The notes under the pieces were generated by a model, which searched no databases, had not been told where the DNA came from, and was given only the letters and a program-made list of their open reading frames with translations. This document shows, one piece after another, positions 1,304 through 19,618 of a stretch of 64,000 nt of DNA. The stretch covers positions 1,302,001-1,366,000 of the forward strand of contig JBLDXI010000017.1 in NCBI GenBank assembly GCA_047495785.1, written 5' to 3'. Each line of letters opens with the position of its first letter. Position 1 is the stretch's first letter. This DNA is from Lepidodermella squamata (taxonomy: Eukaryota; Animalia; Gastrotricha). A program made the translations under genes and the position numbers.

Positions 1304-2539
1304 CCTAGCTAGTTCTAAAGTTTAAAATTATTTATGAATAAAATGTGATAATATTATAAAGCTTTATCATTATGAATTTAGGAAGTGTTTTACCCCATGC
1401 ATATCTGGTTTAGTTCTTAAGGGTCTATTTGTATGGCCTTTTAAATTTTGGAATGGGTAACCGGAATATGAGTTCAAATAATAATAGACCTTTTGAATGC
1501 TCATAAATTAGCCAACAGTGCTAACAATTTCGGGGAGATGAGTAGCCAAAATTTAAAGGTGTGTTGGGGATGGCTAGATAAACTCTTATACGGACTTTTC
1601 CCATTTCCCATTCTTTGCCAATTTTTCCAATATGTTAAGACTAACATTACATTCGAGAGGGGGCATGGAACGTTCGCGATAGAGGTCTTGTTGGAAGCAT
1701 GTTATGATGGTGATTCATTTTAACCATCATAAAAATTGGCAGCGTTCGAGCACAGGTTCGCTCTTATAAATGACACCTGAATAGAACAGCTAGATAGCCA
1801 GCCAGGTGTGGGGTTTTTTGTATATGAATGACGACATTTTGATGCATAATAACGGGGAACAGCGGTTTGCCACTTTAACGCAGGTGTGGAAAACGGGCTG
1901 AATTGTTCAAGCGCATCTTGGCAACCATACCTACTATTCCTATGAATAAGAACTATCTGCGTCTTAGATTTCTATACTTTTTCTCCTACGATAAGCATAT
2001 ACGATAGCAATCTTTTCCTATACTATAACCCTCTGGCTGGCTTAGGTCTTACCTAGCTTACGTAGGTCTTTTGCATTGGCCGCTGTTTTGTTTGGGTTTA
2101 TTTAAGCAACTTTTCCTTTCGGGAAAAGAATCGAACATTTTCCCTGAGGGTTTAATCAGAATTTATTTTGGAGGAACCAATTATCAAACTTGGAACTTGT
2201 GTCTCGAATCATTAAAACTTAATAAGCTTTAGTTTTTTGGTGATCACGCCTTGTCATCAAAGTGATGATACAAAAATCTATAGCTATGCTATTTTTTTTA
2301 AATATTTATCACTTAAAATCATAGAATCCCCGATTTTTATTTTTTTATTATTAGTTTTAATTTATTATTAGCGAATTAACTTATCAAAATGTGGCTCCGT
2401 TACCAGTCAATTTTGGTTCTTCTGGAAGTAATATAGAAACTGCAAAGTAATTTAGGTAAAACCATCGCCCTTTCAATGTCCACTTACTCGAATCATAATG
2501 ATTCTCTAAAATTGGGCTATTTCCATTTTAATATTCTGA

Positions 2540-4235
2540 CTGCCATGATATGATGAAAATAACTGTTCCACTATACTTATATTGATGCTGTTTTATAGAG
2601 GCAATGCATTCAACGTCACGGCATTCCCCAATGCTTCGCAGCATTAGCTGCGGCAGCTACTTCACTGACGACTTCGAAGATGGGACATCTATGTTTTCGA
2701 TTTTGGACCCGTCTGTTGATCACTCAGCTCAATCGTTCTTGGTGGCCAATGCTGATCTTACCACTCCAACCTGGGAAGGCGACGGAAATAATCTCGAATC
2801 AACACATTTTCCGTTTGATCAAGATTTGATTGATAAATTTAATAAAATTCCTGACCCGAATTCGTCTAATGATCAGCCCATGGACCAAGCCACAACGTCC
2901 CGTCCTGCGAACCCGTGTGAAGATGTAAGCACATTGAAAATAAAAACTCTGTAATCAGTACCTGTTTTTGTGTTAGACAACGCTGGTCGTAAACAAGAAA
3001 GATGGAAGGAAGAGGGATAGAGCTGAAACGAAAAAAAGCGACAACAATAAAGCGGCGAAAAAATATCGCGAAAAAAAGAAGAAAGAGTGTGACGATCTGA
3101 TTGCGGTATAATTCTTTTTCCAATGTTATCAAGGCCATATTGATTGACGGCTTTCAATTTTTCAGATGTTGAACATTGTAACCGGAGAGGTCGAGCATCT
3201 CGAACGGATCCACATCCGATACAGCAAGCTGATAGCTCAGCTGTTCGAATTAAGTCAGGCTTCCAATTCGCGCCCTGCGCCAGCTGAGGAAATCGGGCAA
3301 ATTTACCAAGCAACTGGCCCGCAATTAACAAGATGGAGTTATAACGGATAAAATGCATCGAAAATACATGCCGAAATTCAGTATATCAAGTCATTCACAG
3401 CAATCTTCCACCACTAAAGCTGTAAATCTTTCGAGAAAAGGCAAACAATTTGGCGAGGAAGCAAATTTATTCTATGCTCGTAGAGTAGTTTTATAATTAT
3501 CATAACCGTAGCGGAGGGTAACTTTGGGCACTTTGGCTTTGCAGTAATAGCTGTGTAACGCCGAACAGGGTTGGTTGCATAACATTTCCCGCCTCTTTAG
3601 CTTGTGATTGGAACAATTTGCTTTGGCGTGGATATCCTTTAGCACTGCTCTCCCAGTTATCGAACAAAGAAAACTCAAGATCCGACGGTTGATTTTTTCA
3701 GGGTATTCGCCTGATGTTAAAAGGCGAAAATTAGGTAATTTTGGACTGTAAACAGGTGCGGCTGTGGGAAAATGTATTTTTTCTCCATTTAAAAAAAAAC
3801 AGATGAATCACAATTGGTTCATAAATTTTTTTCGAAATTTGACCAAGGGTCGATGAAACTGAAAACGTGCGCAAATTCAAAATTACCAGCCAATATGCAA
3901 ACAATATTTTCGATCCCCAAAAATCAGATAAATTTCGTAAAATCACCAAAATTAATGCAGATACATTCGGATTCACCTTACACACCTATTTCTTGTGTGT
4001 CTTCTATGTCATAAATTTCTGAATTAAGACAGATTTATATTAATTCTCAAAAAGCATGGTTCTGTCCAAATTTACCCTCCGCTACGGTATCCCTGCATTT
4101 CCTTCATTTGTCATCTATATGGAGGCCTGTGAATAATATTCAGCTTTTCTTCAATAAAAACAGAGATTTACGAACATCTTAACTCAATGCAAACAGACTG
4201 CGCGTTATTTTTATCTCAGGTTGGACGAGATTAAA
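2540..4235 (+). repeat. Segmental tandem duplication, copy A (copy B at ~5480-7020)
   Basis: Coding, intronic and ~0.8 kb of downstream non-coding sequence align by eye, e.g. ttctatgctcgta.agtagtttt...gcggagggtaacttt at 3470 and 6380, and gcgttatttttatct.agg at ~4202 and ~6987. Confidence 0.85.
2604..3351 (+). CDS. Divergent bZIP transcription factor (cluster copy 2); exons ~2604-2925, 2977-3105, 3166-3351
   Basis: Spliced product ...KKSDNNKAAKKYREKKKKECDDLIA|MLNIVTGEVEHLERIHIRYSKLIAQL, with N-x7-R-x9-L spacing. The start is uncertain: there is a splice acceptor at 2598 and an ATG at 2631 that is conserved with copy 3. Confidence 0.8.
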
Positions 4236-5479
4236 GTTCACTCTCAAAAAAGTCTCGTTATAGCCCTATACAAAAAGAATAAAGACGCGGGAGGAATTTT
4301 TAGGAGGGGAGCATCCTTAGAGGTCTTAAATTCGAAAATTTAAAATCATCAAGAAAAAACTGAGTATAAGAACATCTTGAAATCGTAGAATCGTCCTTCT
4401 TCAAGTGAGCATACTTTTTGAGATTTTGCTGGAAAATACAGAAACTTCGCCAAAGCCAACTTTTCACTTGTTAACGGTGATACGTGGGCTGGAAATTGAG
4501 GATGTTGATTCATTCGAACTCACGTGAAAACTGCCAACGTTCGAGCACGAAATTTCACGTGTAAAGGTTGAACACCTAACACACCGCCTACAGACCACAG
4601 AGAAAGCCATCGTGCTTTTCCATTGTATAAGCAGAAGACGGTACGAAATGAATTTAGAAATGACGGCATTTTTATGAATTAGTTTTTCCCGCCGCAGCGG
4701 GCACACGAGGTGTGAAAAAACGGGCTATATTTTTAAGCGAATATCTTGGCCACTAAACTAGTCATAAATTGATATATATGCCTTTTGGAGTATTAAGAAA
4801 TGTTTCTAAAAAAGTTGTTCTCTTATGGAAAGCCTACTGCAAAACTCTTCGGCTATCTTCAAATTATTTCAGCTAGTTAGCTTGTACCCTAGGTCTTTCG
4901 TTTTGCGGTCTATCGTTCCACAGGCCTTTTTGATTATATAACAGGAACTACATTTTTTGATATATTTTGAACTGATCAGTTCAAAATTTAGCGCGCGCGG
5001 GAAATTCTACGTCTATTATTTCGTAGCGATAATAATTTGGGGCAATATTTTCTTGACCTTGTCAAATATGAAATATGTTTCATCCAGAACAAAAAATTGT
5101 CCTAAAAGTAAACGCATCTCGAATTTTTAGGGCGAGATAGCTATATCCATAGCTAAAATCGAAATTTTTAGTGATTTAATAATTCTGCAAAGAATTCCTT
5201 TAGTTCGTCTGTAGATATTCTAAAACAAGTCCACATGTGCCCTACGACGTTCTCCCAAAATGTGTACAGCTTGGAATGCCGCATCGATAGCCCCGTTCTA
5301 CCACCCTAATAAATAGCCTGGACAATGCCTTAAGAGATTATGGATGGCAATTTTAACCCCAGAGACCTTTGAAATTTTAGAGACCTTAGAGCCTTCTTCA
5401 ACACTTTTCCCTCCTCTTTGAAGTAAATTACCACGAATCCTAATACTCAATATTGGACTGTTTCATCATACAATTCCAG

Positions 5480-7020
5480 TTACGGAGATTTTATGAAATT
5501 TACTGTTATACTTTATTTTGCTGTTCTATTATAGAGGCCGAGTATTCAAAGTTACGGCATTACCCAATGCCGCGCAGCTTTAGCTGTGGCAGCTGTCTCA
5601 TGGACGACATCGAAGATGCAATATCTTTGTCTTCGATATTGGGAATAAAGGACCCGGACCCGTACGCTGATCACTCAGTTCAATCGTTGGTGTCGAATGC
5701 TGAACTCTTCACTCCAACCTCGTCAGATGATGCAAATCACCCCAAATCAACACATTTTTCGTTTGATCAAGTTTCGATTGATAAATTGAATGAAATTCCT
5801 GATCTGAATTCGTCGAATGATCTGCCCATGGACCAAGCCACTACGCCGCGTCCTTCGAGCCCGTGTGAAGAAGTAAGCAAGTATAGCAAAGAATTTATAC
5901 ACCAGTATCCATTTTCTTGGTAGACAACGCTGGTCGTAATCAAGAAGGATGGCAGGAAAAGGGATAAAGCTGGAACTAAAAGAAGCGACAACAATAAAGC
6001 GGCGAAAAGATATCGCGACAAAAAGAAGAAGGAACATGACGATCTTATTGCGGTATAATTCTTAATCCAATGATGTTATATCGGGGCGCTTGATAGACGG
6101 CTTTCAATTTTTCAGATATTGGACATTGCAACCAGAGAGGTTAATCAACTCGAATCGATCCACATTCGATACAGCAAGCTGGTGGCTCAGCTGCACGAAT
6201 TTAAAATCACACCCCGGCCAGCTGTGGAAATCGGGCAAATTTACCAAGCTGCCGGTCCGCAATTTGCAAGATGGAGTTATTCCGGATAAAATGCATAGAA
6301 AAATACCATGAATTTCAATGTATAATTTGCAGCAATTTCCGGCTCTAAATTGAACATCTTCTGAGAAAAGGCAAATTCATTCTATGCTCGTAAAGTAGTT
6401 TTAATTATCATTACCATAGCGGAGGGTAACTTTGAACACTGGCTTAATCCTTAAAAATGAAAACTTATTTTTGCTGGACATTCGCCTGAATTTCAGGTGA
6501 GATTCGGCTAATTTTGGACTATTTATGAATATTTATATTTCTAAATTTTTTGATAAAAACAGATGCAACATCTTCAGTTTTTTTAATTTGACCCAAGAGT
6601 CGATAAAAAATGATAACGCACAATGTCATTGCGTGCGCAAATGAGCGTTCAAAATTACCCGCTATAATTGTCCAAATATATGCAAAAATGTTTTCCATCG
6701 CAAAAGAAATCAGGTGAATTTCAAAAAAATCACCTAAATTTGCAGATCAATCCGGAATCACCTCACACTCCTATTTCTGAAATATCATGAATTTCCGAAC
6801 TAAGACTGAATTTTTGCTGAAAAACATGGTTTCGTCCAGAATTACCTTCCGCTACAATATCCGTGCATTTCCACCATTTCTAATCAAGGTTGAAGTTTGC
6901 GTGTGTTGAGGTCTATGATTAATATTCAATTTCGTTAATAAAAACGGGAGTTTTCAGACTATTTTTTTACTCAATGTACAAACAGTGCGTTATTTTTATC
7001 TGAGGCTTTCGGCGAGATTA
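5480..7020 (+). repeat. Segmental tandem duplication, copy B
   Basis: See copy A; boundaries are approximate. Confidence 0.85.
5567..6289 (+). CDS. Divergent bZIP transcription factor (cluster copy 3, recent duplicate of copy 2); exons ~5567-5872, 5924-6052, 6116-6289
   Basis: ...KRSDNNKAAKRYRDKKKKEHDDLIA|ILDIATREVNQLESIHIRYSKLVAQL...RWSYSG*. Exon structure matches copy 2. The 5' end is uncertain. Confidence 0.8.
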
Positions 7021-7204: not shown

Positions 7205-7828
7205 ATGATTCGCCGCTCTAAGTCCGATCAGGTTTGATTATATTGCTGAATTGTTCCGGGCTCTTACTTTACTTTAAAGACTCATAACCATCCCGCTGAA
7301 ATGGATTTCCACCGGGAATTGACGAAGAAAGAACGCAATAGATTGGCTGCTGCAAAAACTCGCGAAACTCGTGGTAAAAGAGTAGCTTTCCTGTCAAATG
7401 TAAAGGCCGTAATTTCGTAATATTTAAAAATAATTTTCAAGAAATAAATTCAGCTTGTTTACAACATTCAAGAGGAGGTTCAAGAGCTGGAGAGCCTCAA
7501 AATCCGCTTTGAATATTTATTAGAAAATATGCAGGATCTATTGGCTTCCGTTGAGATGAATCGGCCATTTAGCTTACCGCTAACTCCAACCGCTGAATAT
7601 CAATTTACCAACAATTTCTTCTGCTCGAACATGGACGAACTTGAAACGCCCAAAGTCGAAGAGCGAGACTATGGTTTTGATGAGACGGCAGTTTGCTCTC
7701 GATATTCTTTATATCGGCCCGAAAACACCCCGATTTATGCTCGGCTGTCTTGGTCAGCTTCTGATTTCTTCACCGAACAATCTTTGGATAACAATAAGAA
7801 GGAAGATTTCAAGCTGCTTCAGCTGTGA
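7205..7828 (+). CDS. Short bZIP transcription factor, Fos/ATF3/BATF-like (cluster copy 4); exons 7205-7231, 7280-7399, 7454-7828
   Basis: MIRRSKSDQ|THNHPAEMDFHRELTKKERNRLAAAKTRETRGKRVAFLSN|LVYNIQEEVQELESLKIRFEYLL. The ERNRLAAAK.R motif is present. Confidence 0.85.
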
Positions 7829-8032
7829 CTTTGTTTGGCACCATCTATCGTGTCCCTTTATGACTCGGCCGTTTTTACAATAAAAAAGTCGATGATTAAT
7901 GTCCTGGTGTTAATCTCTGAGACGTATCATTATGTCAGGTCACAGCGCTGTGACCTAGAGTATAGCAGGGTGTCCTTGAAATCAGGGGCCAGTTTCTAAG
8001 GTCCCCAAGGGCCAGTTATTTTAGCATCGAAA

Positions 8033-8677
8033 ATGGACATGGACTTTTCTATAAGATCATGGGACTTGTCTATTTTCGCAGCTAAATCTCGAAAAATCAG
8101 TATGACGAAGGTCGCAGATGACCGTTTCGTCAACTTTGCTCGAAAAGCTGAACCTTTTTACGCCTGGCTGCGGCAAGCTAACGATTACTTTTCGATCGAT
8201 TTAATTCCAAGTCAAGACCTAGGTGATATTATTGAATCTCATGGCAAATTCAAAGCGTCAATGGTCCAAGCTCAGAAGGATCTGGTAAAACTAGGCGAAA
8301 TCGATGTGGATTGCCCGAATCCTTACACCTGGATACGCATGGCTGATTTGAGAAACGAATGGGAAAAATTGCAACGGGCCGTTTCCCGCCGGGATGAAGA
8401 AATCGCTCGAAAATTCAGCGAGCAAAAATGGACGTCAATCTACTTTTCACCTGTTCCTAAAACGTCGTTCAAACAGCTGAAAAGCTACCTGCGTTCGGTT
8501 AATTATCGATTCCGTGGCGAAATTGTTTATGACAAGAATGCGAATTACGCCATCATCGACTTTGAACAACCGGCAGCAGCGGAAATTCTACGCCAGCCAA
8601 CTTTTGCGTTCGATAAATGGGGAATCACTTCTCGCGTCCATGAAATCAATCGATATGATGACTATCAGCAGTCTTAA
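8033..8677 (+). CDS. Intronless chimeric protein: one alpha-spectrin-type repeat plus a C-terminal RRM-like domain
   Basis: FVNFARKAEPFYAWL...H.KFKAS...AQKD...NPYTWIRMADL.NEWEKLQRAVSRRDEEI resembles the NPYTW-containing penultimate repeat of alpha-spectrin (recalled from memory). It is followed by RNP2-like (SIYFSPV) and RNP1-like (NYAIIDF) motifs. The true start may be the ATG at 8102. AATAAA at 8717. Confidence 0.7.
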   Translation: MDMDFSIRSWDLSIFAAKSRKISMTKVADDRFVNFARKAEPFYAWLRQANDYFSIDLIPSQDLGDIIESHGKFKASMVQAQKDLVKLGEIDVDCPNPYTWIRMADLRNEWEKLQRAVSRRDEEIARKFSEQKWTSIYFSPVPKTSFKQLKSYLRSVNYRFRGEIVYDKNANYAIIDFEQPAAAEILRQPTFAFDKWGITSRVHEINRYDDYQQS

Positions 8678-9406
8678 ATAAATCCAAATTACTGTAAAAC
8701 TATTGGTATTCAGCTTAATAAAGGCAGCACATTTACTTCATTTCATTTTGAGTGCAGCAATATTTTATTTGACAAGAGAAAATAGGACAGTTTTCATTTA
8801 GATTACGTGCGCGACTTGAAAACTAACTTGAAAGTTGCGTTATACTAATAATGCCTGTTCGAAAATAGCTCAAGAAGTCGGTCAGCCGCAGCAAAATGGC
8901 TGATGTGTGCGGCTTCAAGGTTTTTTTATGAGTAATGTTTCATAAATTTGCTCTCATCATAAGTAGAGAGGTATTTGCAAAAGATGAATCACGTTGACTC
9001 AAGTTTTATTTAGAACACAGAATGGATTACATTTAAACCTCAAGAACGGCTCTACAACGTTTGAGCCAACTCATTTCAGTCAGGCTTAGCCCGAATAAGC
9101 AGCTAGAATTACAATTTATTTCCAAAAATTGTATAAAATTGACATTATTTGCCAACGACTATTCAGCCAAATTCAATTGCCACCATCAATTGGAGACAAA
9201 ATCAGAGGCATTGGGCAATTTTAAAAATTGTATTGCCGCAAGTCAGCTTCAAAAAGTTCGATTTTTTAAAAAAATTTTCAACTACAAGTAGGACAAGTCT
9301 ACGATTTTTTCTATTTCAATCGACAAACTCTAGATCTCTTAGAAAATCATAATTTCCTTGTCTGTAAAAAACAATTCGCTTTCATTCACTTATGACAGAA
9401 AAAGCC

Positions 9407-9790
9407 GTAGTGCGACATTTCAGCCGACGACAACTCAGCCAAATCGCAGCTAAAATTAATTAATTTCATACAAATGGGCAATTAATTGCGTAATATCAAG
9501 TTCGAAAGGGCGCCGGGGAACAATAAGACCCAGCACCCAGCAGACTGGACCTCATCGTCCGAGACTACGACTTCGCCCGCGTCCTGATCTCGGTCTTCCT
9601 TGGCTTCCTGAACCGCGCCATCTTTGACACATGTAACATCCAACTTTGTTTGGCCCAGTCTTTGGCTCTGGATCATCCACAGCACCCTCTCGATCCATTT
9701 CATTGATATTACGCTATCAATTGCCCATTTTTATGACATAAATTAATTTTTTCGCTTGGCTGAGCTGAGTTGGCTGAAATGTCGTAGAAC
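9407..9790. mobile_element. Non-autonomous TIR element (~90 bp imperfect inverted arms) enclosing a 203 bp GC-rich insert
   Basis: 9413-9499 (cgacatttcagcc...aaatgggcaattaattgcgtaatatcaa) is the reverse complement of 9703-9784 (ttgatattacgctatcaattgcccattt...ggctgaaatgtcg). No TSD identified. Confidence 0.7.
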
Positions 9791-10804: not shown

Positions 10805-11076
10805 ACCACAAAAAATGCACCCTAATTAAGGGGCATATTATCACCCTTATTCAGTTATTTTGCACCCTAATTACAGGGTGGCCAAAAAATTCCGCAGAGC
10901 GGGAATTCGCTGCGCATCAATTTAATGAGGAGTTTTAAGAAGTTGAAGAATTTCAAGCATTCTTTTGCCAATGGAATTCCTCAATTTCTTGAAACTCCTC
11001 ATTAAAATGATGCGCAGCGAATTCCCGCTCTGCGGAATTTTTTGGCCACCCTGTAGGGTGAATTTTTTCTGGTGTA
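10805..11076. mobile_element. Older short TIR element into which the CAGGGTG MITE inserted
   Basis: Left ACCACAAAAAATGCACCCTA versus the right-end reverse complement ACCAGAAAAAATTCACCCTA. Confidence 0.6.
10874..11053. mobile_element. Tc1/mariner-type MITE (CAGGGTG termini, TA TSD), near-palindromic
   Basis: TA|CAGGGTGGCCAAAAAATTCCGCAGAGCGGGAATTCGCTGCGCATCA...TGATGCGCAGCGAATTCCCGCTCTGCGGAATTTTTTGGCCACCCTG|TA. A second copy lies at 55701-55879. Confidence 0.9.
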
Positions 11077-11623: not shown

Positions 11624-13262
11624 CTAGAAGATAAGACGCTTGAGACCATACGGGCCCATTTCTTCGAACTGCCGGCGGGTGATCCATTTGCTGTGGAACG
11701 AAGACAGCGACGCCAGGATGGAGCCGCCGATCCAGACGGAATATTTCCGCTCGGCCGGGGCGACAAGTTTCGGCTTCATCGCAGCCGGGGTTAGATTGAT
11801 AATTTCCGTCTCCAACCTATCCGCAAGACCCTCGAGCACGGTCGTACCGCCAGACAACACAATGTTGTTGTACAACTTCTGGCGAATGTCAAACTGGCAA
11901 CGTTGGATCGAATCGACGACCAATTTGTGAATTCCAGGCGCGTCCATGCCGACTAGGGATGGCTTGAATAGAGCCTCCGGGCACATGAAACGCTCCGGGC
12001 CGATGGTCACCTCAGAGCCATCCGGCATGTTTGTGTACACCTTGTTGTAATCTTCCATCAGCCTCGCGCATTGCGACGCGTTAGCTTCTTCCAGTTCTTG
12101 CTTGGCTAGGTCGTAGTTTTGGTGGACAAAGCACAGCTTCTCCTTAATGTCCTTGGCAATTTCGAAGCCAGCGCTAGATTGCAGGGACAGGCCGACAGAT
12201 TCCATCAGCAGCGTTACGAGGTATTCGGTCAAATCGCGACCGGCAAGGTCGAGGCGCTTGATCGCGCTCGGAATGGCGTAGCCCTCGAAAATAGGGACAA
12301 CGTGCGTGACACCGTCGCCTGAGTCGATGACAACACCCGTCGTGTTGCCCGAGGCGTAGAGCGACAGCACGGCTTGGATGGACACGTACATGGCTGGCAC
12401 GTCGAAGGCTTCGAACATTGTTTTGAACATATTGACTCGGTGGTTGGCCGGATTTTGAGGCGCCTCTGTAATAGAAGAAAAAGGTCATGTTCAAAAATTG
12501 AAATAAAAACTCCTCCTTAAAATTTCATTTTTTCGCTCAAAAATCTAACGATTAAATTTATCAATTTCAAAATAATGATAATAAATTGAGCGTAAAAACG
12601 AATCAGGATTCCCGGTTCAACCCTCAACTTGAACTCCAAATTTTAACATTTTTTCAAAGTTGTTGCCATCAATATTTGAAATTGGACGTTTCAACCATAG
12701 AGAATGAAGTGATTCTCTATCATTTTATTATCTATGGCTTCAACAATTGAAGAGATGATTTTATATTCCAGATTTTTCTATCGATTCGCCAAATTCTCGG
12801 ATGAAAGCTGAAATCTCTAAGATTCGAGTGACCTGTAAGCTGAAAGCTGAAAGCTGAATTTTAGTCTCTCAATGCACTAGAATGTGTAAGTGAAGGTTCA
12901 AATTGCGTGTTTTATAGCAACTAACCTGTTAGAAGAACGGGATGTTCAGCCGGGTTGACGCCGAGCTCTCGCCAGAAGGTGTGATGCCAAATGCGTTCCA
13001 TGTCATCCCAATTCGTAACAATGCCGTGCTGCATCGGGTAGTTGAGCGTCAACAGGCCACGCATTTCCTGCGCATCATCGCCTACGTACGCTTCACGCGA
13101 CGTGATGCCGACGAGCACGTCGCGCTGGCGAAGCGGGTCCGGCCGGCCGACAACAGCCGGGAAAATGGCGATGGGCACGTCATCGGTCGCAAAACCGGCC
13201 TTGACGGAACCTGTTCCGTTGTCGATAACTATAGGCTTGCCAAAATCCTCAAAAGCCGCCAT
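11624..13262 (-). CDS. Divergent actin / actin-like protein (~392 aa); exons 13262-12926, 12465-11624
   Basis: Motifs [36 protein letters not shown]|[45 protein letters not shown] phase-1 GT-AG intron gives an intact frame (1179 nt). Confidence 0.93.
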
Positions 13263-13806: not shown

Positions 13807-14346
13807 TCAAGCGGTCGAAGTCGCTGAAGTGACTCGTTTTTTCTCTCGAGCGCTGAAAATATAAAAAAATTATGAACAATTCAAATTTTAATTAAAAACT
13901 AACATTTTCAAACCGCGTCTAACCAGGTAAGCTATCAAAACGAAAACGGCAGCTATAAGAATAACAGCCGCTGCCACAGATAGCCCAATGACAGCTTCTT
14001 CAGATAACGGACCGTAAGGTGAGGGTTCAGACGTTGTTTGAACATTCGACGTCCAGGTCGAGGTCGATTTACCAATTGTTGAAGTCATTCTCGTCGTCGT
14101 TGTTGTTGATGTTGTTGTAGTCGTGGTTGAAGCTACCGTTGAAGATTCCGGCTGATTTGGCGCCGATGTTGAAGTCTCTTCAGGCGGGTTCGTCCCTCCG
14201 CCCATACCTTGCAGCACTGTAAATTGAACGAATCGAAAAATAATTTAAAATTCGCGTAAAAAATACGATCTACCTCCCAAAGCGTTGTGGAGCGTGTCGT
14301 ACAGATTTCCGGCCTGAATGTTACCGTAGAGATTCGGCAAGACCAT
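13807..14346 (-). CDS. Small S/T-rich single-pass membrane protein, paralog A (3 exons)
   Basis: MVLPNLYGNIQAGNLYDTLHNALG|VLQGMGGGT, then a Thr-rich stalk, SPYGPLS, TM (VIGLSVAAAVILIAAVFVLIAYLV) and a basic tail. Exons 14346-14274, 14216-~13904, ~13852-13807. Confidence 0.7.
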
Positions 14347-14674: not shown

Positions 14675-15332
14675 TCAAATTCGCCCCGATGGCCCGACCG
14701 AGCTTTGCTTCCTGAAATTAAAAAAAAAATAATTAAAAATAAATTTCGCAAAATTAAATCGCGACCAACTTCTTTTTCACGCATTTCGCGATTCCGTAAG
14801 CCGTGAGAATTATTATGACGATCAAAACAATGCCACCGCCGATAATTACTGCTAGGCCAATTTCGAACGATAGCGGGCCGAATGGGGACTTGCTAGCAAT
14901 TTGCGTCGTAGTACTGTTGTCTTTACTTAAAGTTAGCCAATTATCGCCTGATGAAGTCGAAGTTTGGCCAGGTGCCAGCCATGATGTTGTATCGCTGAAG
15001 CTATTGATCAAGGTCGAAGTTCCAGCTGCGTTATTGGAACCTCCTGAACCTTGAGTTAATGTTGCTGAAGGGGATTGAGTCGAACTTGAAGTTCCGGAAC
15101 CTTGATTCGAGCCTGAGGACGGAGTTGTATCTGCTGTATCCGTCCCAGTGTTGTCTTTGGTTCCATCGGTCCCGGTATTTGTCCCACTGCCCATCGATGC
15201 CAAAACTGGGATTCGAAATTAATTTGATCAGCCTTAAAATTAATAAATAATTATTTTACCGTTCAGGGCATCTCGCAGCGTGCCCATAAGGTTTCCCGAT
15301 TGGATATCGCCATATAGGATCGGATTTACCAT
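14675..15332 (-). CDS. Small S/T-rich single-pass membrane protein, paralog B (3 exons)
   Basis: MVNPILYGDIQSGNLMGTLRDALN|VLASMGSGT, then a S/T/G stalk, SPFGPLS, TM (IGLAVIIGGGIVLIVIIILTAYGIA) and a basic tail. Intron phases match paralog A. Confidence 0.7.
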
Positions 15333-15630: not shown

Positions 15631-16692
15631 TTATCTCGAGAATAAGGTAATAAGTTGTTGCTGTTGCGCGTCGTGGTCTTTTTTGCCGAAATCCATCGGC
15701 ATAGTAAGGGCGGATGGGTTGTTGCTGAGGTTTGTATTGCCTTCGAGGATAGACGGGGATTCGTCGTCGATGCGATGATGCTTGGCTGTTGACGCCGGTT
15801 GTTGGCCGAATAACTTCGATCGAGATATCGAAGCGCCAAGTGACAGGAAAAACAGTACTGAAAGCATGTAGGCAAAAGCCTGTAAAAATTAGAACAAATT
15901 TAAAAATGATGAAAAAGGAGAAATTTAATTTAAAAAAAAATTACCCCAATTGAGCTAGCTAATGTGTTAGCAGGACAAGTAACCCCACTCTCAACTGGTG
16001 CCAAAGACGTTGAGCTAAAATTTCCGGGAATCGTAGTGATTAAAACAGGAACTGTAGAGGTTTCATTAGCATTTGTTATGCTGATGGCATAAGTAGTCGG
16101 TTGCTCAGTTGTAGCTTCCATTGTCGAGATCATAGCTGGAACTGTCGTGTTACCCGCTGGGGTCGTCGCAATTACAGGCATGGAAGGTAGCCATGATAAA
16201 TAATAGCACATCGTAATAACCAAGCCATAAACCACAAACATAATTGCCATGAAAAAATCCTGAAATTTTTTCAATTTTAATTAATTTTTTAATAACGATT
16301 TTAATTTGTTTATACCATCCTAGTCCGAACAGCTTGATGAGCTTTGGGAATGATTGTTCTCATAAGGCGAAGTAGGACGATGGTAGTCATGACCAGGCTA
16401 ATTGCCGGCGGGACGAACATCCAAATCCATGTTAGCGTGTCACTGCAGCTACTGATGAAGCTCATCAGCATACAGAGTAGTATGAAGGACCAGACCTTCG
16501 CAATTAAGAAATTGAAAATAAAATCATTTAAAATTAATTTTGATTTTATACCCATTGGAAAACTTGGAAAACAAGTTTGATAACTATTGTTCGCTTAGCA
16601 AGTTCTCTCATTTCGTAGGATTGAGCGCCTTCTATGCTGTCGAAATTTCGAAACATCGGGCACACCATCTCGCCGACAATTGAACGGCTCAT
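15631..16692 (-). CDS. Four-TM membrane protein (MARVEL-like topology) with a Thr-rich loop; 4 exons
   Basis: Phase-0 splicing joins MSRSIVGE...IKLVFQVFQW|VWSFILLCMLMSF...WIWMFVPPAISLVMTTIVLL...RM|DFFMAIMFVVYGLVITMCYY...(mucin-like loop)...SSIG|AFAYMLSVLFFLSLGASI. The MARVEL label is based on topology only. Confidence 0.6.
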
Positions 16693-18106: not shown

Positions 18107-19467
18107 TTAAAAGCATTTGCGAGCAGTGACACTTGGTCCGAATTCTTCGTAGTCTTGTTTAGTAATCCACATTTTGCTAAATGAGCTAAGAGCAGCGAGG
18201 GTGGATCCTCCGATCCAGACGTAGTATTTACGGTCTTCGGGCGCCGTGATTTCAACGCTTAGCCGATCGAGAACCAACGATTTCAGCTCGAGGGTGAGGC
18301 GCTCTTTGAAATTAGGCAGCATTGTGGTTCCGCCTGAGAGGACGATGTTTTCAAACAGCCGCGATTGTAGAGACATATCGCACTTTTTGATCGAGTTGTA
18401 CAGCAACTGATGGACCCCGGGCTCGTCGTAGCCGAGAAGCGAAGGTTGGAACAGGACCTCGGGACATTCGATCCGCTCAGTGTCCAACACGACTTCCTTA
18501 AATTGAAAAATCATAAAAAATTCGAATAATTTTATAAAAAAAAATATAAAAGAATTAATTGAAATTGATTGAAATTTCGGAAAAAAATTTTGTAATTTTG
18601 TAATTTTTTTGAAAGATTGAACTGGTATAATTGATTGATTTTTTTTATTTTTAAATTTGATTGAAATTGATCGATTTTTTAACTGAGAGAAAATTCGAAA
18701 AATTAGCAAAAATATGAAATAGTCATTACTCTGCCATCGGGTAGCATGTAGGTTTTCTCCATTTTGCCCCGCTGGGTGTTCATTTCGTCCTGATAATCGA
18801 GCGCAACACAGCACAACTTTTCCTTCATATCGCGCACAATTTCACGCTCAGCAGTCGACCGGAACGGGTGGCCAGTGTGGCGTAGTAGGGTGACTAGATA
18901 TTCTGTTAAATCACGCCCGGCAACGTCGAGGCGTTTAACTGTCATCGGGGCGCAGTAGCCCTCGTAAATTGGCACAACATGCGTGACGCCATCGCCTGAA
19001 TCTAAAACTACACCCGTTGTTCGGCCTGATGCGAATAGCGACAGAATCGCCTGAACTGAAACGTAAGCGCCTGGGGTTTGGAAGGTCTCAAACATAATTG
19101 TCAACATTTGTTCGCGATTTTTGCGAGGGTTCAACGGCGCTTCTGTCAACAGAACAGGATGCTCACTGGGGTCGACCCGTAATTCGTTGTAAAATGTGTG
19201 GTTCCAGATTTTTTCAAGGTCGTCCCAATTTACGACAACGCCGTGTTCGATCGGGTAGCGGATTGATAGTGCGCCTCGGGCTTCTTGCGCCGAGTCGCCG
19301 ATGTAGCACTCTTTTGATGTCATGCCGACCATGACGCCGACGTGGCGTGGAGTTCCGATTATTGAGGAAAACACTGAACAAGGCACCTCATCGCCGGCGA
19401 ACCCGGCCTTCATCGCTCCGGAGCCATTGTCGATAACAATGGGCCTAATTCCATCGTCCAAATTCAT
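18107..19467 (-). CDS. Divergent actin / actin-like protein with some Arp1-like residues (375 aa); exons 19467-18730, 18496-18107
   Basis: Motifs [56 protein letters not shown]-terminal ARKCF. Spliced length is 1128 nt. Confidence 0.93.
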
Positions 19468-19618
19468 CACTAAAATCCTAAAAATATCTGAAATATCTTT
19501 AGCTAATTTTTGAAACAAATTGCCTTTTTGTAAATAATTATGTGGTATATCAACTATTTTTATCATTTTTCAAATAGAACTTAGATGCTTTTACACGAAT
19601 TTGTGGGGTTTTCTTGGT

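Follow-up and report, generated by a model that had tools for sequence, protein, structure and literature searches.

The high-affinity site that nucleates the association of alpha- and beta-spectrin is formed by repeats 20 and 21 of alpha-spectrin together with repeats 1 and 2 of beta-spectrin (PMC12269838). The open reading frame (ORF) described here, from the gastrotrich Lepidodermella squamata, differs from this two-repeat module in that it encodes an equivalent of repeat 20 only, which is diverged and has a shortened B-C loop. The ORF lies in a 64,000-nucleotide stretch of genomic DNA (the window), to which all coordinates given below without a contig or locus prefix refer. Our main reading, to which we assign a probability of roughly 0.55, is that the ORF represents a separate, lineage-restricted gene for a protein of 191–214 residues, in which a duplicate of alpha-spectrin repeat 20 is combined with a ferredoxin-like domain, and which would be expressed and act as a small adaptor.

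Genomic setting of the ORF

The sequence-only reading of this stretch described an intronless ORF of 214 codons in a region where other genes have introns. This was borne out, and the exact coordinates, the ATG and the TAA were confirmed. Neighbouring genes do carry introns, such as the 72-nt phase-0 intron of bZIP gene 4 at 7400–7471 (by reading). The ORF is present in single copy, as judged from a search of the 121-Mb assembly, and its reading frame is open already from position 8000, giving an open frame of 225 residues. The following features delimit the ORF and its putative transcription unit:

7826–7828, + strand: stop codon TGA of the upstream bZIP gene 4, which spans 7301–7828 (by reading)
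7879–7884, + strand: AATAAA of the upstream bZIP gene, the 5' bound of the transcription unit of the ORF
8033–8677, + strand: intact ORF of 214 codons, ATG to TAA, in a single exon
8073–8081, + strand: splice-acceptor-like sequence TTTTCGCAG (by reading)
8102–8677, + strand: alternative product of 191 residues with Met24 as its start, to be expected should the acceptor-like site serve spliced-leader trans-splicing (by reading)
8677–8682, + strand: AATAAA overlapping the stop codon of the ORF (by reading)
8717–8722, + strand: second AATAAA downstream of the ORF (by reading)

The ATG at 8033 is separated from the bZIP stop codon by only 204 nt. Situated between the stop codon and AATAAA of the bZIP gene on one side and its own stop-overlapping AATAAA on the other, the ORF has the appearance of a gene in its own right. 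Translation could begin at Met1, in the start context AAAATGG, to give a protein of 214 residues, or at Met24, and the same two domains are present in each form. The acceptor-like sequence TTTTCGCAG ends at 8081, which is 20 nt 5' of the ATG at 8102 and 197 nt past the upstream AATAAA. An acceptor-like site just before an ATG and after the AATAAA of the preceding gene is the arrangement looked for in a trans-spliced downstream gene. The homology to spectrin begins just past Met24.

Together with their spacers, bZIP genes 2 and 3 form a tandem unit about 2.9 kb long (1700–4220 versus 4500–7005, with 77–94% identity in blocks). The ORF is located outside this unit, and neither bZIP gene 4 nor the spacer of the ORF is recognisably within it. 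About 80 nt 5' of the first ATG of the ORF, at 7939–7954, a perfect 16-bp palindrome is found, GTCACAGCGCTGTGAC, which is unique in the window and has one other copy in the genome, with one mismatch (C23:394384). It could be a site for a dimeric transcription factor.

Several further elements were noted downstream of the ORF. Nested inverted repeats at 9051–9788, with arms of 35 nt (9051–9085 and 9754–9788) and 48 nt (9452–9499 and 9703–9750), are reminiscent of the terminal inverted repeats found in small non-autonomous transposons. A decayed bZIP copy at 9110–9720 was suspected from three short collinear repeats, and was rejected on an alignment identity at random level. Just 3' of bZIP gene 5 there is a near-perfect hairpin (10872–11055; 84-nt arms, 94% complementary, with a 16-nt loop) which may represent a foldback element or MITE, or else a long hairpin RNA. 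On the reverse strand at 11624–13262 and 18107–19566, 3–11 kb downstream of the ORF, there are two divergent actin-like genes, both containing introns, and a local grouping of fast-evolving, cytoskeleton-derived genes may exist here. Three ORFs on the reverse strand (13888–14217, 14754–15203 and 15930–16274) encode a Ser/Thr-rich mucin-like stretch, then a hydrophobic segment and, at the end, a short basic tail, and look like a small family of single-pass membrane proteins. No Rfam match was found in the window.

The N-terminal spectrin repeat

The N-terminal half of the protein contains one recognisable domain:

8108–8428, + strand: single spectrin repeat, residues 26–132 (Pfam, BLASTP and structure model)

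The Pfam spectrin profile PF00435 matches residues 31–124, covering profile positions 2–103 of 105. With the N-terminal half alone the match is above the cut-off of 29.9 bits (E 3e-7, 31.2 bits), and with the whole ORF slightly below it (E 2e-6, 28.7 bits). Helices are predicted at residues 27–53, 63–86 and 103–130, albeit with low pLDDT in the AlphaFold2 model. The best matches among PDB sequences are to rod repeat 3 of alpha-actinin-2/4 (1QUU, 1HCI and 1WLX; E 4e-8 to 6e-7). Residues 2037–2149 of human erythroid alpha-spectrin, i.e. repeat 20, are matched with an E value of 9e-6. Helix A of the ORF, FARKAEPFYAWL, resembles the actinin sequence FAKRAAPFxxWL.

Within the genome, the nearest relative is an exon of alpha-spectrin (G000:C9:3640622–3640966; 36% identity, E 6e-14), and this is the sole other genome match. 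The identity of the C9 locus as alpha-spectrin is clear from its 323-codon exon, which aligns with residues 1918–2231 of human SPTA1 (E 9e-115) and is followed by EF-hand exons. Pairwise BLASTP aligns the N-terminal half with this alpha-spectrin at E 8e-19; of the 112 columns 34% are identical, and the alignment has a single gap, of 6 residues, in the B-C loop. Repeat 3 of the species' own alpha-actinin (C21), compared exon by exon with each exon taken singly, is only 23% identical to the ORF over 82 residues (E 1e-4), with an additional 14-residue match to helix A on the preceding exon. The ORF is clearly nearer to alpha-spectrin than to alpha-actinin in these alignments. The gene structures differ as well: alpha-actinin repeat 3 is interrupted in helix A/B by an intron roughly 620 nt long (positions 5403–6022 of L017, G000:C21:481000–490900), whereas the exon containing alpha-spectrin repeat 20 (L002 1105–2076) is uninterrupted. 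Both genes have a GC content of about 60%, compared with about 40% for the window of the ORF.

The repeat of the ORF and alpha-spectrin repeat 20 share the three-helix organisation, FKAS in helix B, the sequence NPYTW before helix C (residues 96–100 of the ORF, nt 8318–8332) and both tryptophans, as Trp45 in helix A and Trp110 in helix C align with tryptophans of alpha-spectrin; the overall identity is 34–36% over 107 residues. The homology ceases at residue 132, exactly where repeat 21 starts in alpha-spectrin. On the strength of these alignments, the N-terminal half is a diverged copy of alpha-spectrin repeat 20, the penultimate repeat. The sequence-only reading had seen a close resemblance to the NPYTW-bearing repeat of alpha-spectrin; the source is correctly given as a repeat of this protein, namely repeat 20, but at 34–36% identity the word "closely" is too strong. 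There are also distinct differences. The repeat of the ORF is isolated, having neither repeat 21 nor the EF-hands nor any flanking repeats, its B-C loop is shorter by 6 residues, its GC content is 43% rather than 60%, and a non-spectrin domain comes directly after helix C.

The C-terminal domain

The remainder of the protein is predicted to form a second domain:

8429–8647, + strand: ferredoxin-like beta-alpha-beta-beta-alpha-beta domain, possibly RRM-like, residues 133–205 (predicted structure)
8438–8455, + strand: RNP2-like motif IYFSPV, residues 136–141, on predicted strand 1, with the aromatic residue at position 2 kept
8543–8563, + strand: RNP1-like motif NYAIIDF, residues 171–177, on predicted strand 3, with the first aromatic residue kept and the second replaced by Ile

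In the AlphaFold2 model of the whole protein, made without an alignment, this half consists of a strand (133–138), a helix (143–160), two strands (163–167 and 172–177), a second helix (180–187) and a final strand (200–205), with pLDDT values of 63–80. Folded alone, again without an alignment, it reaches a mean pLDDT of 76.8 and a pTM of 0.68, and the "recognition" value of the language model is 3083, compared with a mark of 2300 that is reached by 91% of real families. A pLDDT and a pTM as high as these for a single sequence argue for a real folded domain. Helix C of the spectrin repeat ends at residue 130 and strand 1 begins at residue 133; in the model helix C runs almost straight into strand 1, which suggests a rigid two-domain unit.

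Assignment of this domain to the ferredoxin-like fold class is supported by the structural comparisons of the model. The Foldseek matches, with E values of about 1.5e-3, were confined to generic folds of the ferredoxin-like type, namely designed ferredoxins and the ABM and dimeric alpha+beta barrels. With VIA-align, PII-like, dimeric ferredoxin-like and ABM chains were found at Z 7.5–8.1, and RRMs (TIA-1 RRM1, Pes4 RRM4, ZNF638, RBM22 and calcipressin) at Z 6.6–7.3, all of them values that the tool classes as "common arrangement". Structural Z scores as low as these are typical of a common fold rather than of kinship. The ferredoxin-like sandwiches (PII-like/CutA, ABM and designed proteins) are the best structural matches, with an rmsd of 2.4–3.1 A over 78–83 residues, but the sequence identity to them is 4–16%, without any family signature.

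The alternative that survives best is that the C-terminal half is a true, highly divergent RRM, in which case the protein would be an RNA-binding adaptor built on a spectrin repeat. The C-terminal half had been called RRM-like from the sequence, on the basis of motifs resembling RNP2 and RNP1. These motifs are indeed present by reading and fall on predicted strands 1 and 3 of a domain with the size and the predicted topology of RRMs (RRM_1, PF00076, or the PARP14/RBM43 type, PF23085); aromatic residues occupy two of the three canonical positions, on the right strands, although the pattern is too loose to be diagnostic. RRMs also show the highest sequence identity among the structural matches (13–17%). 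The clusters nearest to the C-terminal half in a language-model search are the PARP14/RBM43-type RRM and RRM_1, with scores of 0.77–0.84, which, being below 0.9, count as leads only. In an hhalign comparison with the 24 aligned RRM_1 domains of the genome, a P value of 0.0013 and a probability of 18.6% were obtained, in a register that brings helix 1 and strands 2 and 3 into line with those of the RRMs and places NYAIIDF opposite GFAFV. For five unrelated controls the P values were 0.019, 0.21, 0.38, 0.0068 and 0.25, so that the profile match stands out only marginally from the background. Other observations weigh against this assignment. No Pfam family, RRM included, matches the C-terminal half even at an E value of 10, and no sequence match was found in PDB (best E 1.1). 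In the Foldseek and VIA-align comparisons, PII-like, CutA, ABM and designed ferredoxin folds score level with or above the RRMs, and the predicted helix 1, with 18 residues, is long for an RRM. The designation RRM-like thus holds for the predicted topology, which is common to RRMs, but neither the profile nor the structure tests single out the RRM from other ferredoxin-like folds. We regard a divergent RRM as a serious possibility, though with odds somewhat short of even.

The profile PF23085 (RRM_PARP14_3) matches the genome at C26:1380278–1380772, C17:1150545–1150742 and C9:545580–545798 (G000). A separate family of PARP14-type RRMs in this genome was considered and rejected, as every one of these matches coincides with a stronger match to the ordinary RRM_1.

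Search for relatives

No true relative of the C-terminal half was found by phmmer among 1.84 billion representative proteins. Four matches were rejected, since each adds up several brief stretches of similarity along a bacterial surface-repeat or low-complexity protein whose Pfam content is unrelated. Of the 97 candidates obtained when the whole ORF was used in a word search, none is significant and none is of comparable or shorter length, and a word search with the N-terminal half yielded no candidates. Metagenome contigs returned nothing in an exact 24-mer search or with back-translated patterns, and the genome contains no paralogue of the C-terminal half. There is no record of the exact products starting at Met1 or Met24; the same is true of two other ORFs of the window taken as controls. 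Records of this genome may be absent from the collections searched, so that a missing record of this kind says little. In keeping with the earlier remark that no protein combining a spectrin repeat with an RRM was known, none of the searches revealed another protein with such a combination. Sampling of gastrotrichs is very thin, and the absence of relatives is therefore weak evidence either way. On these searches, the gene may be called lineage-restricted only loosely.

Origin of the gene

The sequence-only reading also proposed, as one possibility, a retrocopy, for which lost introns were to be checked. This proposal is unsupported: the corresponding segment of alpha-spectrin lies within one exon of 323 codons (L002:1105–2076), so that there was no intron to lose and the argument from intron loss fails. 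No poly(A) remnant or target-site duplication was seen flanking the ORF, though at such an age both could have decayed. The GC content of the ORF is 43–45%, compared with 60% for the alpha-spectrin exon, and the copy would therefore be old or under a different codon pressure. The same difference speaks against a copy made recently and against a chimera created in assembly. The L. squamata assembly was built from multiple-displacement-amplified DNA, and the adult transcriptome is the only one for the species (PMC11660948). A chimera arising from this amplification was considered and rejected, as both halves are single copy, the N-terminal half is only 35% identical to alpha-spectrin and the GC content is different.

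We propose that the single alpha-spectrin exon encoding repeat 20 was partially duplicated at the DNA level, and that this gave rise to the N-terminal domain. The duplicated repeat would since have changed until about 35% of its residues remained identical, while its base composition came to match the local one. It is joined directly to a ferredoxin-like alpha/beta domain of about 75 residues, which may be either a very divergent RRM or of local origin. The gene is presumed to be expressed. Either it would have a promoter of its own, with translation from Met1, or it would be a unit behind the bZIP gene that is matured by spliced-leader trans-splicing, with translation from Met24. Taken together, the gene is probably a lineage-restricted chimera.

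Two other gene models compete with this duplication and joining of domains, and we consider both of them unlikely. According to the first, the ORF has no function and is either a relic or a frame extended by chance, i.e. a decayed fragment of alpha-spectrin that is never translated. This would agree with a search that found no relatives, product record or transcript-derived protein, and with a GC content near the value for the non-coding DNA around it. It is difficult to reconcile with a frame that is intact over 214 codons in spite of a divergence of about 65% from the source in the N-terminal half, by which time stop codons or frameshifts would be expected in a neutral relic. Moreover, the 82 codons past the repeat are also open and encode a confident single-sequence fold, and the hallmark residues of the spectrin repeat are kept. 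ORFs of such length are rare in the window, where 19 reach at least 170 residues in 64 kb, and the other long ones that were examined are actin-like exons. In the second model, the ORF would serve as the last exon of a longer gene, for example bZIP gene 4 with an alternative 3' exon, spliced at the acceptor ending at 8081. This model could draw on the good acceptor-like site within the 5' end of the ORF, the short distance from the bZIP stop codon and the local introns of typically about 70 nt, but the bZIP gene has its own stop codon and AATAAA before the ORF, a poor sequence, GTTATT at 8015, is the sole donor as far away as an intron would require, and homology starting directly after Met24 leaves little need for upstream coding sequence.

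Possible function and significance

As a chimera of a repeat-20 duplicate and a ferredoxin-like domain, the protein could act as a small adaptor, in which the three-helix repeat docks side by side on another repeat of the spectrin family and the alpha/beta domain binds a second ligand, either RNA or protein. Weak lateral docking on a spectrin-family repeat would be the most natural activity of the N-terminal half. Nucleation of the spectrin dimer requires alpha repeats 20 and 21 together, and as the ORF provides one diverged repeat with a short loop, strong competition with alpha-spectrin for assembly is unlikely. The sequence-only reading had suggested that the protein could tether RNA to beta-spectrin or compete with spectrin assembly, and the lack of a second repeat weakens both ideas. 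A more specific and far less probable version is that of a gastrotrich-specific adaptor in which the repeat-20 module binds repeats 1 and 2 of beta-spectrin (or alpha-actinin) while a cryptic RRM binds RNA; we consider this a long shot. If true, it would tie the localisation or translation of mRNA to the cortical spectrin skeleton, through a domain combination that our searches found in no other protein.

Should the ORF prove not to be expressed, it would merely be an orphan ORF, although an unusually well preserved one. If it is expressed, it would represent a clean case of gene birth by partial duplication, in which a repeat of a giant cytoskeletal protein was combined with a domain without detectable ancestry, in a phylum, Gastrotricha, for which functional genomics hardly exists. 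The protein would further provide a natural minimal spectrin repeat derived from the dimer-nucleation site, and thereby a means of asking which partners a lone repeat of this kind can bind.
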